Below, one piece after another: positions 901 through 56,430 of a DNA stretch of 64,000 nucleotides (the first letter of the stretch is position 1; the number at the start of each line of letters is the position of its first letter). Below the pieces are notes generated by a model. The model was given only the letters and a program-made list of their open reading frames with translations. It did no database searches and was not told the DNA's origin. The stretch comes from Cetorhinus maximus (taxonomy: Eukaryota), in contig NC_135880.1 of the NCBI RefSeq assembly GCF_964194155.1, positions 190,030,001-190,094,000 of the forward strand, in the 5' to 3' direction. The translations under genes and the position numbers were made by a program.

Positions 901-1329
901 CAGGGAAGAGTGTGAGGAAGATCAGCACTCCTCAGGTGTGTAGGATTTGTCAGAGCATGAGGTGGACCCCATAAATTCAGTAGAGCCTTTCATGGATTCC
1001 AAGTCCATGGAGAGATGTGCAAGGAATGCCAGGGACAAACCTAATCTATACAAGATTTTCAGAACAATGACGTGTCTACGTGACCATCACTCCATCACCT
1101 GACCTCCATCGCCTTGCTGGGATGCAGACCAGCCCTGCCATCCTCCCTTGCTGAGTAAACTATAAACTTGCTTCCTCTACCACTTAGAATATTGTGCGTC
1201 CTTTATTAATGCAACACCAAATGGAAAAATCACCTATTCCACTTTAGTGCTCATACATTTATTTTCTTCCATCATGACTAAGCGCAGCCCTAACATCAAC
1301 AGTTGAGTTAGAGACAATCTACTCAGTCT

Positions 1330-2777
1330 CATGCCCTATTGTCTTGGATGACCATGACTCTGGAGCCATGGGGCCTTAAGGGCTCCAGCCTACTGGGGGT
1401 CTCCCGCACTGATACAAGGGCGTCTGCCTTGGCCTCGCCTTCTGGGGCTATTGGTGGAAGAGATGAGGAGACGTTAACACTGGAGGTGCCCTGAGGTGAT
1501 GGCCCTAGGGTAGCTGGCATGCACTCCTCCTGTGCCTGTGTGCACGATGGCACCTCCTGTCCCTCTGAGGGGAAGGGGCTCCTGGAGGGAGGTCCAGGTG
1601 CCTCATCCCCATCTCACCTAACCATGGCTAGAATGATGGAATGCAGATCAGAACACATATGGATCGAAGGCTCAGCCTGGCTCTCTATGGTAGTCACCAT
1701 CTTCTCCATGGATGAAGTCATGGGCTCAAATGTCTGGAACATGGTCGAACTCATGGCTTACATGGACTCCTCCACACCCCACCTAAAGCTGTGCACAATC
1801 CGCCATATTTTCCCTTAGCCTTTGCAGGCTTCTTGAGGTCATGACTAGAGGCCCATCATCAGCCTGGGGTTCAGCTGGGGCCTGATCACCAGTGGTCCGC
1901 TGATCACCTGGGGACCTGGCTGTCACATCCTCTCTCAGCTCCTGGGATGTGTCTGTGGTGTGTGCATCAGATTGTGCTCCCAAATCTACACGTGAACCTT
2001 TTCCGGACTGGTTATAACTGTGCCGGCAGAGGTTGATGATGAGGCAGTTGACTATGGGGCACTGGTTGCTTCGTCCCCAGGGGTGAAGTCTTTGGGCTCC
2101 TGTCTTGGCTGAGGCCTGGCCTTTGGATGGTGATGACCTGTAGTGGAGAATAAAAAGAATCAGATTAAGAACCATTACAGTTTGAGCCTTCAAATTTCAT
2201 CACAGCCATCCCGTGTTTCCATTGCCACCAACAGGATGACTGCCTCTTTCCCTTTGCTCCTGGTTGGTCCAGCCTCACCATCTGACACTGATTGTGCTCC
2301 CTCCTCACCAATGATCTCCAACACCTCATCCTCAGTGGCTGTGACTTCATCCTCAGGTCTGGAACCTCTCCTCCTGTCTGTCTCCTCTCCCTGCTGTTGT
2401 GGGTGAGCTTATCCTGCACAACAAGGAGCAGAATTAGTGACATGTCAAGTGACACCTAATCCCTTTGTCTGCATGCATCCCCAGCATAACATACTACCCT
2501 GTCATTTACATGTTGCATCCCCCATGAGAAACTCCTGTTGAAGATGTGACACTGGCACTTTCCCTTACAAATCGGAGAAGGCCATTGAACAATTTTCTGC
2601 ACTGGACCCAGGTTCAGTTGCTCATCTCCTCTGCCTCCTCTGTCCAAGCCACCTTAGACAGGAGGGAGGACCTTCTTATGCCATCTTCACCTCCCGCCTT
2701 TCCCTGACAGCCCGGAGGAGAACATGCAGGGAGGCATCTCTGGGCCGTGGGGTTGGGTTGCTGTGACAGGCAGACAT
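1330..2777 (-). pseudogene. Harbinger Myb/SANT-like DNA-binding protein gene remnant (intron-containing)
   Basis: ATG at 2777; DASLHVLLRAVRERRE...AW...TWVQCRKLFNGL; after an acceptor near 2415, DKLTHNSRERRQTGG. Confidence 0.7.
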
Positions 2778-3304
2778 TTCTGCAAAGATTATGCTATTCT
2801 CAACCAGTGGTGAATTGTCCTGGCAGTGATGCACAGTGATGCTCTTTAATAGGCTGCCCGTAGATGCTGCATTGTCAGCTGACAGTAGGTTTTACCAATG
2901 AGAATCTACTCCACTGCTAAATTGCACATGTTTTGCATGCATGCCTCTGGCACTTAGAATTTGAATTATAATCGCTTGGGAAAAGGCAAAAAAAGAGAAA
3001 GCAGAAATAGCACTCAGTTCCTATTACAAAGTCGGAAATGACACGCTGTTGATAAAATCCTGGTCTCTTTGTTTCCAGCATGGATTCCTGCCTGCTAGAA
3101 GCACTTGTCAAAAATTCACAGGCACACAACTTTATAGCCAAGGTTTCAGCCTACTTTCTCAAAACTTAGCCCTTTTTAAAATCAGTTTAGTTCACAATTA
3201 AAACTGGTGACTTGTGGCATTTCCTCTCCTTCTGAGTTCTAACTAAATCCTCCATTCTCCTTCTTCCTCTATCCTCACTATATTAAAATCAAATCAGCAG
3301 AAGT

Positions 3305-17725: not shown

Positions 17726-18739
17726 AAGTTATTTTGAATGAAGACACAGCATTTCATGAATAATGCTTCAGAGATGGACCAGTGCATGTGGATAATAGTA
17801 AAACTCCTATATAGACATAAATTAAAACAAAAATGAATGTATTTACTTAACACCTTAACATAGAAAAATGACTTTGAGCGCTTCATAAAAAGTGTAACCA
17901 GGCACAAATGGACATCACCCAAAGAAGAGATATGGGGAAGGGTCACTAAATCTGAGTCAAAGTGGTAGGTTTTAAAGAAGAAAAGAAGGTGGAGAATTTT
18001 AGGGAGAGTATTCCAGAGCATAGGGCTGAGATGGATGATCCTCCTGGACTGCTTGGTGGTCACCCATCCCTGATTTGCCTGCACAGTCTTCACTGTGGGG
18101 TGACATATTCAGAGATATGCTATCCATATAGCCCTCAGCCTTGCTGATGTGCTACAGTGATTCCAGATGCTACTCAAGTTCCAAAACCTGGAGCTTGAGA
18201 TCTTCCAGCTGGCAAAATTTCCTGCACATGTGGTTATCCAAGGTGCAAGAAGCGGCCAGGAGTTCCCATATGGAACAGGATATGCATTCCATGGGACTAA
18301 GGTACCTTTCCATGCCTCTATTTATTACAATAACTCAACTTAGCAGAAATAAATTTAAAGATTTATTAAGTACATATGTTAACAGAATACTTACCAGTTA
18401 TTTGCCAATCAGCACCTTCTCTTGTAGTGATATCAATTTTAGTTTTCTTTTAACCTCACTCCTCACTGCTTGTTTTCACTCTGCTCTGTTGCTCTGGCCC
18501 TGAACTCCTTCAAGGTCCCAGTCCTTGCCTCTGGGGTCTCCAAACAACCAATTGTTCACCTGCTGCCCTGTGATATCAGTCCTTGATTTTTTGATTTGTA
18601 ATTTGTTCTCTCAGTGCTCTCTGTGATTCACGCTGACTCAATGTTGTGGCTTTTACCTGTTGGTCTCTGGTACAGATGCCCCTCAGGCTTGGCTTTCTGG
18701 GCAGAATCTTGTCCACTTAAGGAATAATCTGCGGGTGGG

Positions 18740-19500
18740 ACACAAGAATACAAAAAATGGAAGAAGGATTAGACATATGATCCATTGAGCCTTCTTCGCC
18801 ATCAATATGATCATTTGGGCTTCCCACCAGCCTCTCATCATAGGACAACCCACTCATCCCAGGGACCAACTGAGTGAACCTTCACTTCAATGCAAGTATA
18901 TCCTTCCTTAAATATGAAGACCCAAAGTGCATACAGTATCCCAGATGTGGTCTCACCAAAGCTCTTTATTCTTTATTCCTGAGCTCTCAATCCCCTGACA
19001 ATAAAGGCCAACATGCCATTTGCCTTTCTAATTGCTTGCTGCACCTGCATGTTGACTCTCTGTGTTCCTTGTATGAGCACGCCCAAGACTCTTTGAACAT
19101 CAACATTTAAAAGTTTCAAACCTTTTAAAAACTATATTGCTTGTCTATTCTTACAACCAAAGTGAATAGCTTCATTACATTATTATCCATCGGCCATCTT
19201 GTTGTCCAATCACTTAACCTGTCTCTATCTCTTTGCAGCCCTCTCTGTGTCCTCCCCACAGTTTAGCTTTCCACCTAGCCTTGTATTGTTAGTGAACTTA
19301 GAGACATCACTCTCCGTCTCTTCAATTAAGTCATTAATATATATTGCAAATAGCTGAGAACCCAGCACTGACCCACTAGGTGCAGCCTGCATACTTGAAA
19401 ATGCCCCATTTCTGCCCACTATCTGCTTTCTGTCCATAACCAATCCTCTATCCATACTAATATATTAACCCCAACTCCATGAGCCCTTATCTTGCCTGTT
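18740..19500 (-). mobile_element. CR1 LINE RT/3' fragments
   Basis: GSVLGSQLFAIYINDL...VSKF on the minus strand; CR1 3' UTR at the left end. Confidence 0.75.
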
Positions 19501-19519
19501 CATGGGTTTATTCTTAGAT

Positions 19520-20025
19520 CATTTTCAAGTCCTGACCTCGCGCCTGATGGCAGCGTGCCTGCTTATGAGGTCTTCCCGGAGCTGCCAATTAAGACACCAC
19601 CTCTGGGAGCAATGCCCAATCAAGAATGATGCCCAGTTTCCTACGGTTGCAGGCCCAGTCTGAGGGCCTTGAAGCCCTGGAAGGACAGCAATGCCACTGC
19701 CAGAAGTAGGTGCTGCCATGTAGAAGGGGGAACGTGAGAGTGCCTCCATTTTGAGGGGCCCTTGAAGAGTTTTCAACAATTTTTAAAAATAGCTGCCAGG
19801 TCACCTTTGTAGAGGGGAAACTCCTCCACAGGACTGCCTGTGGCTGAAGCTGTAACTCCCTGCTACTCCTGTCAGAGGGTAAATGCAGGGGGCCTCGCTG
19901 GCCCCCAACCTGCCGGAAAGATCCCAGCAGTGCCTTCAATCTGTCCATAATTGGACATGTAATTATTCAAATTGGCTGCCTGTCACAGCTGTTGCCAGTG
20001 ATGACCCTCTTCAGGCAGGTTCACC
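19520..20025. mobile_element. Probable degenerate non-autonomous DNA element directly upstream of the array
   Basis: ccaattaag...taattgg internal motifs as in 7611-8274; termini not resolved. Confidence 0.4.
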
Positions 20026-20039
20026 TAGAAACAGTGACA

Positions 20040-20131
20040 AGTTCTGGCATGATAGCCAAGTGGTTATGGTACTAGGCTTGTAACCCCAAGATCAAGAGTT
20101 CAAATCTCACCATGGCAAATTATGAAATATA
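20040..20131 (+). mobile_element. Spacer 1: 5' head of a tRNA-derived SINE (3'-truncated)
   Basis: A-box TAGCCAAGTGG, B-box GAGTTCAAATC, then caccatggca as in the window's other SINE heads. Confidence 0.7.
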
Positions 20132-20145
20132 TAGAAACAGTGACA

Positions 20146-20270
20146 TGATGTCAGCTGTGGCTCAGTACTTTGCCTCTCCTCTCTGAAGAAGAAGGTTGTG
20201 AGTTCAACTCCCACTCCAAGACCTGAGCATAAAAATTAATGCCACATGACCAATTTTTGGAGAATAAATT
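20146..20270 (+). mobile_element. Spacer 2: 5' head of a second tRNA-derived SINE family (3'-truncated)
   Basis: tgtcagctgtggctcagt...gaaggttgtgagttcaactcccactcc; the same head occurs on the minus strand at 20681-20757. Confidence 0.75.
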
Positions 20271-20284
20271 AAGAAACAGTGACA

Positions 20285-20514
20285 CTGTCCAAGAGGACAG
20301 CTCTGCATCAAAGACTCAAGATACAGAGAAAAAAGACACATTTAAGAAAATGGAAGAGCAACTACTTTTCAATAAAGTGGACGTGCCATCTGAAGTAGTT
20401 AAAGACAAAAAGCTGAAGAAAAAAGAGAAACGGCAGAACATTAAATGTGGCATCACACCTCTGACTGGCAAAAACTACAAGCAGCTCTTAACTAGGCTGG
20501 AAGCCCAAAAGAAT
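20285..20514 (+). pseudogene. SURF6: Spacer 3: retrocopied internal fragment of SURF6 (surfeit locus protein 6) mRNA
   Basis: LLFNKVDV...KKKEKRQNIKCGITPLTGKNYKQLLTRLEAQ matches recalled vertebrate SURF6 LIFNKVEV...RRKEKRQRVKGNLTPLTGRNYRQLLERLQA. Confidence 0.88.
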
Positions 20515-20528
20515 TAGAAACAGTGACA

Positions 20529-20862
20529 CGCATGCGCGGGGCTCGGGGGTGACTAAGGCGGGAAGAGGAGGCGGGGAGCGGAGAGCCGAGTCTTGGTCAC
20601 CGGAGCAACAGGAAACTCTTTCGAGTTATCAACAGTCACAGATTGCAACTCTTTCGAGTACAATCACAGTTCTTGGTTTCCGGGAGTGGGACATGAACCC
20701 ACAACCCTCTGATTCAAAGGTGAGGGTGCTATGAACTGAGCCACAGCTGACACCTCAGAGCAACAGGAAGCCGAATCCCCTTGAGCCGCAAGCATGACGG
20801 ATAAAGAAGCAGCCTTTGATGATGCTGTGGAAGAACGTGTCATTAATGAAGAATACAAGATC
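20529..20862 (+). pseudogene. RBBP4: Spacer 4: retrocopied 5' UTR and first 23 codons of RBBP4 mRNA
   Basis: GC-rich leader, then ATG at 20794: [23 protein letters not shown] (RBBP4 begins [27 protein letters not shown]). Confidence 0.93.
20615..20757 (-). mobile_element. Short SINE insertion inside the RBBP4 leader
   Basis: tRNA-like head on the minus strand; exact 12-bp TSD GAGCAACAGGAA (20603-20614, 20758-20769). Confidence 0.85.
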
Positions 20863-21179
20863 TAGAAACAGTGACAGGCTCTTTGGGCTGTTGTGATATT
20901 TTTATTCACATCCACTTCGATCCACCTCGTAAGTGTTTTACGGAGACTCAGTTAACAAAATATTAGAAACAGGAACATGTTAGGCCACCGATTGATGCCT
21001 TCATTTCAGAATTTTCTCCTGTTCATGTTCAAGCCATCACTGCAGGGCCAAATAGATTCTACTCTCTGTCTCCCTTCGGCATTCTCTCTGCCTATGAGCA
21101 TATAAACATACAAAATTATGGACAAGAAAAATATACACTGGTCCATTGCATATCTGTCCCATATAGTTGTGACATAGTC

Positions 21180-21475
21180 CCTCAAAGAGAGGAGTTCATT
21201 TGCCTCGGAGCCCGTGGCAAGAGTTTGTGTTAGCGGGATTTTAGCATGGGGAGGCTGAGGTGCTGCAGCTACCACATGGTTCTGACTGACCAGGAAACTC
21301 TCCCTTTCTTACTGCCTGCCATAGGTGTATCGGAAGGATTTACGGGTTCACAATCAGCCTGCTTGGTCACGCCACAAATGTACCTCTCGCGGCCATCAAA
21401 TCCTGGGGTGGGACTCAAACCCAGAGTTTCTGGTTTAGAGATAAGGATGCTACCCAGTGCACCACCAGACCTCCA
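21180..21475 (-). mobile_element. tRNA-derived SINE nested in an old CR1 3' end
   Basis: Minus-strand head ggaggtctggtggtgcactgggtagcatc...gggtttgagtcccacccc. Confidence 0.65.
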
Positions 21476-21979
21476 CATCAGAATGCGGGCGGTCCCCAGA
21501 CACCCAAAGTCATGTAATCTCCTGAGGGAGGTGAAAAACCAGACAACACCAAAAACACAGCTCAAACAGAGAAAAAAAATATATAACATTTCTCTTCAAA
21601 ACCTTTAGACCACCAAAACTAATCCAAGAGATTAATTTGACCCTGTTTTATGTTATAGCTTTCACCCAAGGTGGCTCTTGTCCAGCCAGAAACAGCTCCA
21701 GCTCTCTCTTGAAGGAATGCTGTGAATCAGCATTCACCACATGAGCCTGTAACCTGTTTCCAGGTTTACTAATCTGTTGAAAAATAAGAACCGCCTAATA
21801 TGCAATTTTCAAAATTTGCATTACTTGTAATGTGAACCTTGGTTCACCCTATAATTTCTGATCCACATAAACACATCTAGTAGCTTGATTAGTTTATAAA
21901 CCTCAATCAAATTGCGCTTGAATCCACGATTCTCTAAAGTATATGGATCCATTTCTTTGAGTTTATCTTAGTAACTTGG

Positions 21980-22560
21980 TAACAACAACAACTTGCATTT
22001 ATATAATGTCATTGACATAATGAGACATCTTATGGTGCTTCACAGCAGTGTTTTCAAACAAAATTTGTCACCGAGCTGCATAAGAAGATATTAGGGCAGA
22101 TAACCAAAATTTGGGCCAATCGTCAAAGTTTTAAGGAGTGTCTTAAAGGAGGAAGGAGAGGCACAGAGGCTTATTTCAAAGCTTGGGACCATGATACCTG
22201 AAGGCACAGCCCCCAATAGTGGAGTGATTAAAATCAGCGATACCCAACAGTCTGGAATTGGAGATATGCAGACATCTCGAGGGTTGTAGGGCTGAAGGAG
22301 GTTACGGAGATAGGTGAGGCCTTGGAGGGATTTGAAAACAAGGGTGAGAATTTTAAAATTGAGTCTTTGCTGGACCGAAGCCAATGTAGACCACACAATG
22401 GTGATGGGTGGATGTGGCTTGGTGTGAGTTAGGGTGCAGGCTGCAGAGTTTAAGTTTATGGCGTGTGGAAGATGGGAGGCCAGGCAGGAGTGCTTTAGAA
22501 TAGTCATGGCATGGATCAAGGTTTTAGCTGCAGATGAGTTGAGGTGGGGGTAGAGTCAGG
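21980..22560 (-). mobile_element. L2 LINE 3' fragment
   Basis: HPPIT...VQQRLNFKILTLVFKSLQGLTYLRNLLQPY...SFKTLLKT, with an L2-type tail. Confidence 0.8.
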
Positions 22561-23812
22561 CCCTGGGTGAGAAATCATGGGTCTTGGTGCTTTTCCTGTT
22601 TCTGGGCCTCTTATTCTTTTTCCGCACCCCTACCCTTTAACCCTCAATCATGTATGACATATTTTTCCTTTCAAGATTCACCAGAAAGGCCCTAGTAACA
22701 TGATAATGGCCATTGTTGGCATCTGGCACAAATATCATTTGATACATATGCAGCATGGATCATTAATATTAAGAGCAGCAACAATATAATGCAGAGTCAG
22801 ACCATGTACGCCATATAGGTGATTCCACCTTGACTTTTAAACAAACCAGAGAGTACAAATTTTTCTTTCACAGCATCAGGCAATACTGTTAACTGACAGG
22901 AAAATACCCCATTAGTTACTTATAACACCGTGCACACTGATTTTGGTAACTGTCTCAGCCCTCATTAACATGTCTGCACTTGCACAATATGAACACAGTG
23001 ACAGTAAACTCGTATTTGGGGGAAAGATTCAATACTTGCAACCCAGATAACCTGCACGAGATGTTTTTCATTCAGTAGAAGAATTAAAAGACTTTCTCCT
23101 GCTTGGGTGCATGGTGTTATTAAATATAATTATTTCATACAATTCTACAAATAGATTGGATTCTATTTTATCAGTAATCTCATGGGGTAGAAGGATCAAA
23201 TGACTCCTCAGTAACAAAGTGTAATGATTGAACAACACAGGTCTTCACTGTCAGTGAGAAGTGTTAGAACTCTCAGGTGTCTCTGTGCAACACAACATTT
23301 AAGAGGCAGAGGACAAAGACTGAATAGTTCACAATTGTATCTGTGTTTTGTTGATGAGCAAGTCCGAAGACTCTGCTGATTGTTGCTTCAAACTACAATA
23401 TATTTTCAATATCTACTATGCAACACATCTTTATCAGTATTTCAATACCTCAAAAAACTCATAGAAGCACCAAGATTGAGTGGGATAATAGGTAAGTAGA
23501 CAACATGACAAGATTGAATTCAATAGAAATTTGAATCATGTGCAGTGTAAATATAAGCCCATTACAGGCTCCTGTCTGGACAATTTCACCCCACAAAGCC
23601 TGCTTACAGTAAACTTCCATTCACAAAATAAACAGAACTCCAGCCATTATTCTACCCTTTGTTCACAAGGTAAGTATGGATGAACAAAAGCTATCTAGCC
23701 CATCTCATCTCATCCATCCAAAATGACATACAAACATATATATAAGGAGCAGGAGTAGGCCATTCAGCCCCTCAAGCCTGCGCCATTTGGTACATTATAC
23801 CAGTGACTACAC

Positions 23813-34569: not shown

Positions 34570-36492
34570 ATGTGCAGTAGGGGAGCCTCATCCCAGCTGC
34601 ACAGCACTGCCCTTAGCTCTGACTTGTGTAATCCAGGAATTCCTAGCATGATGTGCAATGGAAGAAGCTTTAGCAAGTCAGTTCCCTGCAGCCCCTGGGA
34701 TGCACAAGAAACCTCCACACAAAGTGACATAAGAATTTCCTGCTGGATGTGTGGGACTGAGATGTCTTGTAGTATCAAGGATGTGGATGCCGCCTGCAAG
34801 CTATGTGGAAAAGTGATTACTTGGAATACGCCCAACATGGGAGCTCTTTGCAGCATCTGTGATTTTGAAGCCACCTGTAAGAAATACTGTGCTAAATCCA
34901 GATGCAGATCTTATAATACAGGACTTAGCAGGCACGCTTCATGCACTAAAGCTACCGACAAACTGCGCAATGTGGGAGCCAACAGCAACATGATTTTTAA
35001 AAGCAAACCATATGACAGAGGACCTACCAGTAGACTCTATGACATGGGATATACCAACATGCCCCATGACACAAGATTGACCAGAAAGCCCTACAGCACA
35101 GAATATAACAGTGAAACCTGTAACAGGGGATTTACCAACAAACCCTATGGTATGGGGCTTGCCAATAAATCCAGTGACTCAGGATTCACCAGCAAACCCT
35201 ATGGCACAGGACTTACCACCAAACCCTACAGTATGGGATTTACCACCAAACCCTACAGCACGGGATTTACCACCAAACCCTACAGCACGGGATTTACCAC
35301 CGAACCCTACAGCACGGGATTTACCACCAAACCCTACAGCACGGGATTTACCACCAAACCCTACAGCACGGGATTTACCACCAAACCCTACAGCACGGGA
35401 TTTACCACCAAACCCTGTAGTACGGGATTTACCACCAAATCCTACAGCACGGGATTTACCACCAAACCCTGTGGCACGGGACTTACCACCAAATCCTACA
35501 GCACGGGATTTACCACCAATCCCTACAGCACGGGATTTACCACCAAATCCTACAGCACGGGATTTACCACCAAACCCTGTAGCATGGGACTTACCACCAA
35601 ATCCTACAGCACGGGATTTACCACCAAACCCTGTAGCACGGGACTTACCACCAAATCCTACAGCACGGGATTCACCACCAAACCCTACAGCACGGGATTT
35701 ACCACCAAACCCTGTAGCACAGGATTCACCACCAAACCCTACAGCACGGAATTCACCACCAAACCCTACAGCACGGGATTTACTACCAAACCCTGTAGTA
35801 CGGGATTTACCACCAAATCCTACAGCACGGGATTTACCACCAAACCCTACAGCACGGGATTTACCACCAAACCCTACAGCACGGGATTTACCACCAAACC
35901 CTACAGCACGGGATTTACCACCAAACCCTATAGCACGGGATTTACCACCAAACCCTGTAGCACGGGATTTACCACCAAACCCTACAGCACGGGATTTACC
36001 ACTAAAACGTGTGATATGGGATTTTCCGACAAACACTATGACACAGGATCTACCAGCCAATCCTATGGTATGGGGCCTCCCAGCAAACCCTACGACAAGG
36101 GAAATACCAGTAGTTTGTGCGACACAACAGCTACCAGTAGCACAGAATATATGCGTCTTCCAGCCAGACTCAACAACCTGAGACTCACCAGCAGCATTTA
36201 CAACCTCAGCAAACTTTGTGAGAGGAGATCCACCAACAGACTGTGTGACACAGGAATTACCTGTAGCCATTGTGACACAAAAGTTACTAGCAGAATGTGT
36301 AACCCAAGAAATGACAGCCACATCAGTAATACAAGCCTCACCAGCAGACCTTATGACACAACTGTCACCAGCGGCCTCTATGACACGGGACTTACCAGCA
36401 AACCTAATGACACAGGCCTTACCAGCAAACCTTACGATTCAGCAGTCAGAAGCAGACATTATAACACAGCAGATCTTATGACACGATTGTAA
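34570..36492 (+). CDS. 640-aa ORF built from 9-aa repeats (TTKPYSTGF core; TSRLCDTG-like degenerate flanks); coding status unproven
   Basis: Open for 1.9 kb, including the diverged flanks; no recognisable domain. Confidence 0.35.
   Translation: MCSRGASSQLHSTALSSDLCNPGIPSMMCNGRSFSKSVPCSPWDAQETSTQSDIRISCWMCGTEMSCSIKDVDAACKLCGKVITWNTPNMGALCSICDFEATCKKYCAKSRCRSYNTGLSRHASCTKATDKLRNVGANSNMIFKSKPYDRGPTSRLYDMGYTNMPHDTRLTRKPYSTEYNSETCNRGFTNKPYGMGLANKSSDSGFTSKPYGTGLTTKPYSMGFTTKPYSTGFTTKPYSTGFTTEPYSTGFTTKPYSTGFTTKPYSTGFTTKPYSTGFTTKPCSTGFTTKSYSTGFTTKPCGTGLTTKSYSTGFTTNPYSTGFTTKSYSTGFTTKPCSMGLTTKSYSTGFTTKPCSTGLTTKSYSTGFTTKPYSTGFTTKPCSTGFTTKPYSTEFTTKPYSTGFTTKPCSTGFTTKSYSTGFTTKPYSTGFTTKPYSTGFTTKPYSTGFTTKPYSTGFTTKPCSTGFTTKPYSTGFTTKTCDMGFSDKHYDTGSTSQSYGMGPPSKPYDKGNTSSLCDTTATSSTEYMRLPARLNNLRLTSSIYNLSKLCERRSTNRLCDTGITCSHCDTKVTSRMCNPRNDSHISNTSLTSRPYDTTVTSGLYDTGLTSKPNDTGLTSKPYDSAVRSRHYNTADLMTRL
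35215..36000. repeat. Homogeneous 27-bp tandem array (about 29 units, ACCACCAAACCCTACAGCACGGGATTT) within a degenerate 27-bp-period region (about 34100-38250)
   Basis: Units are directly visible; an accagca(g/a) motif keeps the period in both flanks. Confidence 0.95.
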
Positions 36493-53949: not shown

Positions 53950-56430
53950 CTTTCTACCACTTAGCCCAATGCTTCACAAAATGAATGACCAGTGTAAATG
54001 CACTCCCAAGAGTGTCTTCTGGCCTGTGGCTCCTTGTAATGATGAGCAGTGTTCGTGTCACTCAGATGTGAAATCTTGGTTCCTGCACAAAGTGAAGGCA
54101 AGTGTCACAATCCAGGACCTTTTGAGCACAGAGATTGTCTGGCTTCAAACTCACTCTCCTGATCAGTGATGCGTGCACCTTGATGTGGATTGTGTTTGCT
54201 GCAAGAATCTCGTACCCAAGTGTCACTGGGCTCCATGAAGTTCTCTGTGTGCTCTCAGCACCTTAGAGGCGGGGCTGCCCCCCATCTCTGTACCATTCCT
54301 GACAGGTGAAGGCGTGGTGCTGCAGGGAACAGGTGATGAAGTCTGCGAAAGGATCAAGTTGTCTTAAAGTCCATGTGGTCACTGTCTCTCAGCAGCGTCT
54401 CCATGATATGAGCCTCTTCACAGAACATATGTGCGCTGCCCTCAGCCAGACAGGTGCCAGACGTTCCCAGATGCAATGTGAAGATCTCAGGAGTGTCCTC
54501 ACTGCATCTTGTCATCATCCTCCTGCAATCTTGCGGCAATGAGGGTCACGCGACAATGCCTGCCTTGTCTGGCCAGCGCAATGGCCTCATTGCCTGCACC
54601 CTCACCTTTCAAGACCTCATCCCCTTTGACTTCCTCCTCATCAGAGGAGACAAGGAGGTCTTGCATTTCCTCATCATACAGGTCCACTCAACATTGCATC
54701 GCCAGGTTGTGTAGCATGCAGCAAGGCACGATGATGCGCGAAACTCTCTGGGGAGTGTACTGGAGTGCTCCACCAGATCTGTCAAGACACTGGAACCTCA
54801 TTTTCAGGATGCCAGTAGTGCGCTCTACCAAACTCCGGGTTGCGGCATGAGCCTCGTGGTACCTTCCCTCAGAAGCTGTCTGAGGCTGCCACATGGGCAT
54901 CATCAGGCATGTCCTTTGTGGGTAGCCCTCGTCCCTGAGGAACCAGCCCTGCAGCTTGCGCTGTCTCTGGAAGATGTCAGAGATCTGAGACCTGCAGAGG
55001 ATGTACAAGTCATTGATACTTCCGAGGTATCTTGCACAAACCTGCATGATCAGTTTATTATGGTCGCAGACCAGCTGAATATTGAGAGTGGAAGCCTTTG
55101 GGGTTCACATACTGGACTGCTTGTTGCCAGGGAGATTTAAGAGCCACATGAGTACAGTCGATGGCACCCTGCACCTGTGGGAATCTGGAAATCTCAGCAA
55201 TTCCCAGTGTTCTTGCTTCTTGGCTCGCCTGATCTCTGCCGAAGTTGAGAAAGTTGTGTGCCTTGGCAAAAAGGGTGTCCATAACCTCCTGGATACATTT
55301 GTAGGTGAAGGCTTGTGCGATTCTGCACAGGTCCCCAGTGGGGCCCTGGAAGGAGTGACATGCTGAAGAAATTGAGTGCAATGGTAACTTTAACTGACAC
55401 TGGCAGTGGATGCCCTCTGAGTCCCCATGGCGCCAAATCCTGCCAAACATGGCATATGTGAGTGATCAGTTCCCTTGACATGTGCAGTCATCAGCGGCAC
55501 TGGTTCTCGCTCATCTGCAGGTAGTACATGTGCAGTCTGTAAACCCTGGGTCTAGTGAGGCGCCTATGAAGGCCAAGCCGCCCCTTGGTCTTCAGGGTTC
55601 TGCTCCTCCCTTTGGTGAGCCAGTTGCCTCCATCACCTTCTTCTCCGTCTTCTCTCCTGCCCATAAGCAATGAGGCAGACAGCGAGATCACCAGACTCCA
55701 TCTTCCTGATGGTCTCCTCACTGCAGTATCAATGGGAGAGATACAAGGGTCAGCAATTGTCTCCTCAGGACCACTCATGGTCAAGTCATTGCCTGTGGCT
55801 ACCTCTCAAGATCCCTTAGCGCATGCCAGGGAGTCCACGCCACCACATGGATGCCCAGTGTTTAGTGTGCATGATGGTTGACCAAAACCCCACCCAGCAC
55901 CGCCCCACACCACATGACCGAGTGGCGATAGCTTTGGCCATTCAACTGCATCCTGAACTCTCATCTCAGGTGCAGGAATTGTCCTAACCTGCACTCCAAG
56001 GCTCCACAGTTTACTTGAACATTGAGGGCGACTTTAATGCCTACTTAAATATAACGTGAGGGATTAGGAGCGCACTCCTCCATCAGTGTTCCATGGCCAC
56101 CTTTCCCAAATGGATCCTCAGGCTTGCCCAGCTGCCCAATGGTTCTGCAGCACTTATTCGAGTTTGAAGTGTGTGCGCGAGGGGTTAAAAGTAGAGAAGC
56201 AATCATTGGCACTCTCAGGGATTAGTGCAGCTTGAGTGGGCACATTTGCTTGACTAACCTGACTCCAAGAATGTCCGATGGCAGGAAATGCGCTCCACCA
56301 TTGATGGGGGAGGGAACAATCACTTCCTGGATTTATGTTGCAGGGAAACGTGCTTCAAGCTTTCTCATGAGATTTTCCAGTCTCACCACTGAGCACGTCT
56401 GCCCTGATCGGGCGCAAAAATATCCCGGCT
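53950..56430 (-). mobile_element. Harbinger transposon remnant with near full-length degenerate transposase (about 54530-55720, - strand)
   Basis: HPLPVSVKVTIALNFF, FPQVQGAIDCTHVAL...NPKGFHS, DEGYPQRTCLMMP, RSLVERTTGILKMRFQCLDRSGGALQY...CCMLHNLA. Confidence 0.85.

Follow-up and report, generated by a model that had tools for sequence, protein, structure and literature searches.

The DNA analysed here is a stretch of 64,000 nucleotides (nt) from Cetorhinus maximus (contig NC_135880.1, positions 190,030,001 to 190,094,000, forward strand), referred to below as the window. Near its first third lies an array in which a 14-nt linker, TAGAAACAGTGACA, alternates with five longer inserts or spacers (S1 to S5), the whole set in non-coding unique sequence. 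With up to two mismatches allowed, the linker occurs six times in the 64-kb window, always on the + strand and always within positions 20026-20977; four copies are exact, one carries a single mismatch and one carries two. In a first-pass annotation this locus was described as an array of captured RNA fragments resembling clustered regularly interspaced short palindromic repeats (CRISPR), built up by repeated hits of a retro-integration machinery on one site. The features are as follows, SINE denoting a short interspersed element and UTR an untranslated region.

20014..20025, + strand: left junction letters GGCAGGTTCACC, defined from the sequence and the contigs of organisms B and C
20026..20039, + strand: linker copy 1, TAGAAACAGTGACA, exact
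20040..20131, + strand: spacer 1 (S1), 6 nt, then a tRNA-like SINE head and a short body
20132..20145, + strand: linker copy 2, TAGAAACAGTGACA, exact
20146..20270, + strand: spacer 2 (S2), tRNA-type SINE head
20271..20284, + strand: linker copy 3, AAGAAACAGTGACA, one mismatch, its first letter being that of the spacer 2 parent
20285..20514, + strand: spacer 3 (S3), internal SURF6 coding fragment, open in frame 3
20515..20528, + strand: linker copy 4, TAGAAACAGTGACA, exact
20529..20862, + strand: spacer 4 (S4), GC-rich 5'UTR, then ATG and the first 23 codons of RBBP4
20615..20757, - strand: full-length tRNA-type SINE without an A-tail, inside S4 and antisense to it
20863..20876, + strand: linker copy 5, TAGAAACAGTGACA, exact
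20877..20963, + strand: spacer 5 (S5), 87 nt, tailless, no match to a named family found
20964..20977, + strand: linker copy 6, TAGAAACAGGAACA, two mismatches, at the position of the native site

Six matches were reached by none of 100 dinucleotide-preserving shuffles (mean 0.65, largest 5), and no further copy with two or fewer mismatches was found elsewhere in the window on either strand. Matches with three mismatches occur at chance density, with 17 outside the array and one (11 of 14 letters) at 20627 in the SINE within spacer 4. When the whole window was searched for 11-mer clusters (at least three copies within 2.5 kb, with gaps of at least 40), the linker array was the sole complex cluster besides tandem and family repeats. 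The count of six linker copies and five spacers of 87-334 bp given in the first-pass annotation therefore stands. A SINE or long interspersed element (LINE) with the linker as its 3' tail was not found in the window, where no further copy with two or fewer mismatches exists. A recombination-signal-like heptamer (- strand), a Helitron and integron-like cassettes were considered and dropped, since the pieces have the look of RNA copies and no second motif is spaced at a constant distance.

The spacers measure 92, 125, 230, 334 and 87 bp (S1 to S5), and four of the five could be identified, all of them in sense orientation on the + strand: two tRNA-type SINE heads, a SURF6 fragment and the 5' end of RBBP4. 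An A-run is present at the 3' end of none of the five in the junction table, and no LINE and no SINE 3' tail was found among the array pieces. The tRNA match of S1 is full-length but weak (20046-20117, 24 bits against an Rfam gathering score of 29, E-value: 0.11); it was the only relevant match in an Rfam scan of positions 18000-23000 at E-values up to 1, and ARAGORN called no tRNA. The alignment of S2 with the inverted full-length SINE inside S4 (80% alike over 70 nt) starts at the first bases of S2 (TG..TGTCAGCTGTGGCTCAGT) and at the SINE 5' end. Because that SINE is delimited by a 12-bp target-site duplication, the first base of S2 corresponds to the 5' terminus of the SINE RNA. In frame 3, S3 matches the Pfam SURF6 profile (27.9 bits, cutoff 23.1) over positions 39-104 of 196, which marks it as an internal piece of this gene; its start lies inside an exon. 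The terminal 23 codons of S4 match residues 1-23 of RBBP4 chains (E-value: 3.5e-8), while the GC-rich leader places the S4 start plausibly near a transcription start. For S5, a second locus with A at 20928 is found in organism A (depth 19.5 of 33.5) and in organism C, which indicates that a single-copy parent exists. Rfam, SINE alignment, Pfam and RBBP4 matches thus bear out the earlier description of four sense, tailless spacers; that the spacers are unrelated to one another holds overall, though not for S2 and the SINE embedded in S4.

The ends of the spacers were judged against contigs compared over positions 18000-23000 from runs X1 (organism A), X5 (organism B), X12 (organism C) and X15 (organism B, guessed to be RNA). 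The nearest S2 relatives, single-copy contigs of organisms B and C (X5 record 28 and X12 record 12), match 20149-20273 and so run on through AAG; linker copy 3 starts with A because the spacer 2 parent continues in this way. A DNA contig of organism C (3575 nt, X12 record 13) matches 20284-20518, that is, S3 plus 1 nt on the left and 4 nt (TAGA) on the right in the flanking linkers. X15 record 23 (1549 nt) matches 20782-20867, comprising the S4 end and five linker nt with two mismatches overall; this match demonstrates parent-like sequence at that point and is not evidence of S4 splicing. For S1, the family consensus in organisms B and C departs at 20127 (loose ends CAATGTAAC..., agreement 0.69-0.78), and the TATA before the linker is unaccounted for. 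Overlap of 3-5 nt with the linker 5' end is therefore present at three spacer 3' ends (S2, 3 nt; S3, 4 nt; S4, 5 nt) out of the four open to assessment, S1 showing none.

These overlaps are the hallmark of a DNA end reading ...TTTCTA-3' that annealed to an RNA and was extended, i.e. of microhomology priming. The spacers end inside their parents, with the contigs resembling the parents of S2, S3 and S4 diverging after 3-5 nt. The first-pass annotation had named a 14-mer native to the end of each parent transcript as an outcome that would overturn its account; the parent-like contigs share only these 3-5 nt of the linker 5' end and then stop, so a linker native to every parent RNA was rejected. 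The string CAGGAA/ACTCT was likewise rejected as a recurrent insertion junction, its second exact match (21291) being internal to another SINE.

Short cDNA-like pieces joined by one constant oligomer resemble a library construct, so that an assembly or library artefact, such as an adapter-joined concatemer of complementary DNA (cDNA), had to be considered. Four runs (X1-X4) of one organism A sample contain 0.79-0.89 of the sampled words of 19700-21300; in runs of organisms B and C the share is about one quarter. The four runs with a high share all come from a single sample, which is possibly the source of the assembly itself; against an artefact, their contigs were built independently. The X1 contigs span both outer junctions into unique flank (19471-20078 at depth 15.4 and 20898-21289 at depth 14) at the depth of the neighbouring unique contigs (11-16). 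Moreover, the last linker copy is genomic in two other organisms, S4 contains a SINE with a perfect 12-bp duplication, and neither the 14-mer nor its complement occurs in searchable paper texts. Based on these results, we regard an artefact as highly improbable. The array is present in the organism A reads and is probably homozygous in that sample.

In organisms B and C the site is empty. One contig in each (X5 record 27, 873 nt, depth 32; X12 record 11, 876 nt, depth 29) covers 19471-20013 and then 20964-21291 with two letters between, at unique-level depth and with at least 325 letters on each side. In the alignment, copy 6 coincides with the one copy present at the empty site, the contigs of both organisms resuming at 20964. 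Because the block of approximately 950 bp at 20014-20963 is missing from these contigs, it is a gain in the organism A lineage; a precise loss of the block in both B and C is formally possible but less parsimonious. The flanks of organism A differ from those of B or C at 23-26 positions in 543 nt, or roughly 4-5%. S2 and S5 each depart from a second organism A locus, with at least one listed difference apiece (20240 and 20928, respectively), and these differences suggest, as a sequence-based estimate, an array age on the order of 1% divergence, against the roughly 4-5% in the flanks. At the left edge, the ten letters GGCAGGTTCA at 20014-20023 lie between two TTCA repeats and are unmatched in the empty-site contigs of B and C; they may be either filler from the sealing of the array in the organism A lineage or the remainder of a slippage deletion in the B/C lineage.

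The organisms at hand offer no intermediate array state, both B and C being wholly empty. This bears on the reading closest to the first-pass annotation, in which site-specific target-primed reverse transcription (TPRT) was iterated in the manner of the R1 element: the leftmost regenerated duplication would have been hit five separate times, each hit adding one microhomology-primed RNA fragment. The enzyme would then recognise the upstream flank together with the 14-mer, and the array would be an ordered record with S5 oldest and S1 youngest. Such a history has a precedent, as R1 of several Drosophila species forms tandem units split by a 14-bp duplication through insertion into the 5' target duplication of a resident copy (PMC2718515). 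The linker of the present array is also 14 nt long, its leftmost copy keeps the native upstream TTCACC, and a nick displaced by a single base would suit the A with which linker copy 3 starts. What fits poorly is the content: all five inserts are non-cognate, with neither a LINE nor its partner SINE between any two copies. The target locus is also single-copy by contig depth, and hence an unlikely home for a site-specific element. We consider five separate hits rather unlikely, and the ordered record that they would leave is doubtful to the same degree. The first-pass annotation had itself named a single block insertion with no intermediates as telling against its account; this is the state seen in B and C, although two species are a weak test. 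Its proposal of repeated re-entry into a regenerated target thus keeps the R1 precedent and loses ground on the missing intermediates and the non-cognate inserts.

We favour instead, with a probability of roughly 0.55, a mosaic retro-insertion in which the whole block was produced by a single aberrant TPRT event at one nicked site. In favour of a single event, inserts that are all non-cognate RNAs are hard to square with independent site-specific hits. Under this model, a staggered pair of nicks at the native TAGAAACAG... motif would free the 3' end of the - strand on the left edge of this motif. The freed end would prime cDNA synthesis on a nearby cellular RNA by annealing over a few bases, on an RNA with TAGA-like letters, and it is this step that the junctions display. 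Synthesis would continue until the 5' end of the RNA was reached or until it broke off. The cDNA end may then have jumped to a 14-nt template reading TAGAAACAGTGACA and copied it. As this template, one can propose the + strand 3' overhang that a staggered second nick exposes, or else a short RNA tail bound to the enzyme. Copying the linker would recreate the ...TTTCTA-3' primer end, and such an end, if left unsealed, could prime on the next RNA. Five rounds would give five linker-spacer units in one orientation, and the left side would be closed by a join at TTCA microhomology, possibly with GGCAGG as filler. Serial rounds of this kind would account in full for the order and orientation of the pieces, the identity of the linkers and the clean frame. 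Non-LTR (long terminal repeat) reverse transcriptases are reported to jump serially from one template to another.

The linker copies are themselves informative about the template. Copies 1-5 share CAGTGACA (GTGACA) where copy 6 has CAGGAACA (GGAACA), a difference of two adjacent letters. Because this difference is common to all five, copies 1-5 are not plain duplicates of the site as it reads now, and the claim of the first-pass annotation that each event regenerated the target is not supported in that form; nor does plain duplication of the present site under the iterated model give this difference. Because copies 1, 2, 4 and 5 are identical and all five read GTGACA rather than GGAACA, one common template for the new copies is indicated. 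Three ways of accommodating copy 6 can be offered. First, the true overlap may be the 9 nt of TAGAAACAG, with TGACA added once to the + strand end and the 14-nt product then copied; three of the five added letters would in that case agree with the native GAACA by chance. Second, a separate short template, such as the RNA tail of the enzyme itself, may have paired with the site at 12 of 14 positions. Third, copy 6 may have undergone a later doublet substitution, which is unlikely because no more than one of the remaining 70 linker letters has changed.

Several points weigh against the single-event reading. The difference in copy 6 is one of them, as it requires an extra assumption, and the ancestral status of the copy 6 type is suggested by its position alone. 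The inner joints are a second: organism A support for them consists of the word share of 0.79-0.89, with no crossing contig among those listed. Third, the search for arrays covered the 64-kb window of one assembly. Finally, no precedent was found for a linker that is re-copied between template switches, the known bipartite and tripartite chimeras being directly fused, and literature searches (supplementary files lay outside their scope) returned no account of a mosaic with linkers between its parts.

Break repair without a retrotransposon endonuclease was weighed as a further explanation. An error-prone polymerase with reverse transcriptase activity, or endonuclease-independent LINE reverse transcription, would pass through cycles of annealing, extension and dissociation between the flank and RNAs. 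Templated insertions that copy flank sequence are a hallmark of theta-mediated end joining, and the short junction microhomologies, the left junction with its TTCA repeat and perhaps filler, and the tailless, 3'-truncated state of every piece would all suit such a process. The clean 14-nt period and the direct-repeat frame formed by copies 1 and 6 look instead like the outcome of a staggered nick with target duplication, and pieces of 87-334 nt far exceed the templated insertions known for the theta pathway. We therefore hold repair of this kind to be improbable.

The SINE inside S4 provides a hint as to target preference. It is flanked by a perfect 12-bp duplication, GAGCAACAGGAA (20603-20614 and 20758-20769), and ends in a tail of two copies of ACTCGAAAGAGT; the doubled tail unit, ACTCTTTCGAGT, has no exact match elsewhere in the window. 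The SINE may have inserted into the parent gene, in the RBBP4 5'UTR, or later into the finished array. Its duplication stands behind TCACC and is similar to the native site TTCACC-TAGAAACAGGAA, the two being in register, with a local score of 11, a post hoc observation for which 1.2% of 19,634 random window 50-mers reach the same score. This resemblance is of the sort expected if one target preference were shared, and to that extent it favours iterated site-specific insertion. If the same enzyme made the S4 SINE and the array, the array would have grown from what is normally the second nick, because the SINE lies on the - strand and the array RNAs on the + strand. The target motif AGNAACAGGAA has four exact matches in the window (two in the SINE duplication, one in copy 6 and one at 22593 on the - strand); with one mismatch there are 12, which is not above shuffled sequence (6 of 100 reach 12), and the motif is a lead only.

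A bolder proposal along the same lines is that machinery of this lineage recognises TTCACC-TAGAAACAG..., re-enters its own duplication and writes in any germline RNA that anneals, so that the array would be a chronological record growing at a leader-proximal end and further loci would be expected. We think this a long shot. The ordered record of hits envisaged in the first-pass annotation finds no footing in the wholly empty sites of B and C, nor in five inserts of which none is the LINE or its SINE. Its attribution to L1-superfamily proteins is not supported either: nothing tested points to L1 (no L1 search was made), and the clean SINE nearby is tailless with a 12-bp duplication. The priming end ...TTTCTA is also not the usual T-rich nick-site consensus of L1. 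What does stand from that account is the presence of retro-derived pieces at one site resembling the 14-mer, priming free of A-tails and a linker related to the target.

Some further observations were made around these SINEs and elsewhere in the window. The second exact AGAAACAGGAA at 22593-22603 (- strand) is 1.6 kb away from the array and inverted relative to it, close to where a high-copy repeat ending in (GTT)n at about 21980 has its 5' end; no clear link of this site to the array was found. Summed contig depth of the S1 SINE family (20004-20170) is 656 in organism A against 816,781 in B and 1,495,008 in C. For the S4 SINE (20505-20838), it is 643,668-827,382 in organism A against 1,300-3,264 in B and C, making this family very abundant in A only. 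With flanks that differ by only about 4-5%, these contrasts look like lineage-specific SINE bursts. At least 271 organism A contigs join the 5' end of the S4 SINE (20753-20757) to its 3' end (20610-20650) with 1-15 variable letters, and such joins may be head-to-tail copies or an effect of repeat contigs. At 34570-36492, an open reading frame (ORF) of 640 aa consists mostly of the 9-residue repeat KPYSTGFTT (27-nt period) and has no Pfam match; long ORFs are also present in other frames and on the other strand, and the region looks like a coding-like minisatellite. An ORF fragment at 42008-42511 matches Pfam DDE_Tnp_4 (27.9 bits), and a similar fragment without a match lies at 55061-55450 (- strand), both being remains of DNA transposons.

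If the single-event reading is correct, the locus is a naturally occurring record of a TPRT intermediate that stalled. It would mean that a primer end, once regenerated, can start synthesis anew on one RNA after another with 3-5 nt of microhomology, and that a staggered overhang or a bound RNA tail can serve as a repeatedly copied template. This bears on the formation of the 5' junction and the resolution of the second strand in non-LTR retrotransposition, as well as on the origin of SINE-like chimeras composed of a tRNA head and a short foreign tail. If serial hits were responsible, the array would be the first case of R1-like re-targeting that stores host transcripts. A LINE with a tail containing TGTCACTGTTTCTA, if one exists, would favour a tail-templated or dedicated mechanism. 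On the single-event reading, the product records which RNAs were near the enzyme at the time. Either way this is a single locus, which carries no indication of function.

Among known systems, the R1 arrays of ribosomal DNA are alike in having one orientation, a 14-bp copy of the target between units and TPRT with a 14-bp staggered nick. They differ (PMC2718515) in that their units are the site-specific LINE itself, their target is the multicopy rRNA gene and their separators are exact. The present array, in contrast, holds unrelated cellular RNA fragments at a single-copy site, with separators that are two letters off copy 6.

Chimeric retrogenes, in which LINE template switching yields bipartite or tripartite products framed by one 10-20 bp duplication, are a second relative. 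They are likewise composed of several RNAs in one orientation, with 5' parts that can reach an RNA 5' end and a direct-repeat frame, but they have at most three parts, are directly fused and terminate on the 3' side in a LINE or another RNA with a tail (PMC2104539). The array resembles them in the single orientation of its four identified parts (all +) and in its frame, copies 1 and 6 matching at 12 of 14 letters. It departs from them in having five parts, no LINE part, no tail (S5, the 3' part, is tailless) and the 14-mer in place of direct fusion at every joint.

Tailless retropseudogenes (PMC5322556) are 3'-truncated copies of tRNA-like RNAs, small RNAs and mRNAs that lack an A-tail and are flanked by target duplications. 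The pieces of the array agree with this description, being 3'-truncated, A-tail-free RNA copies with linker copies on both sides. The retropseudogenes of that source are single dispersed insertions made by L1 in therian mammals, as opposed to serial insertions at one site.

The likeness to CRISPR arrays, with which the first-pass annotation began, is one of outline only: short direct repeats, unrelated inserts and a single orientation. Here the repeat is 14 nt, the spacers range from 87 to 334 bp instead of being uniform in length, and their source is host RNA rather than foreign sequence, with four of the five being host SINE, SURF6 or RBBP4 pieces and parent-like contigs present in relatives. 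No CRISPR acquisition or effector genes and no leader were found in the window, where ORFs of at least 130 aa were listed and six were scanned against Pfam (one matched DDE_Tnp_4 and five matched nothing). Use of the array as a record is likewise not indicated. The run of array-free organism B that is guessed to be RNA has zero depth on the unique flanks. Rather than an immune-memory array, the locus is most probably an infrequent side product of reverse transcription where the DNA had been nicked.

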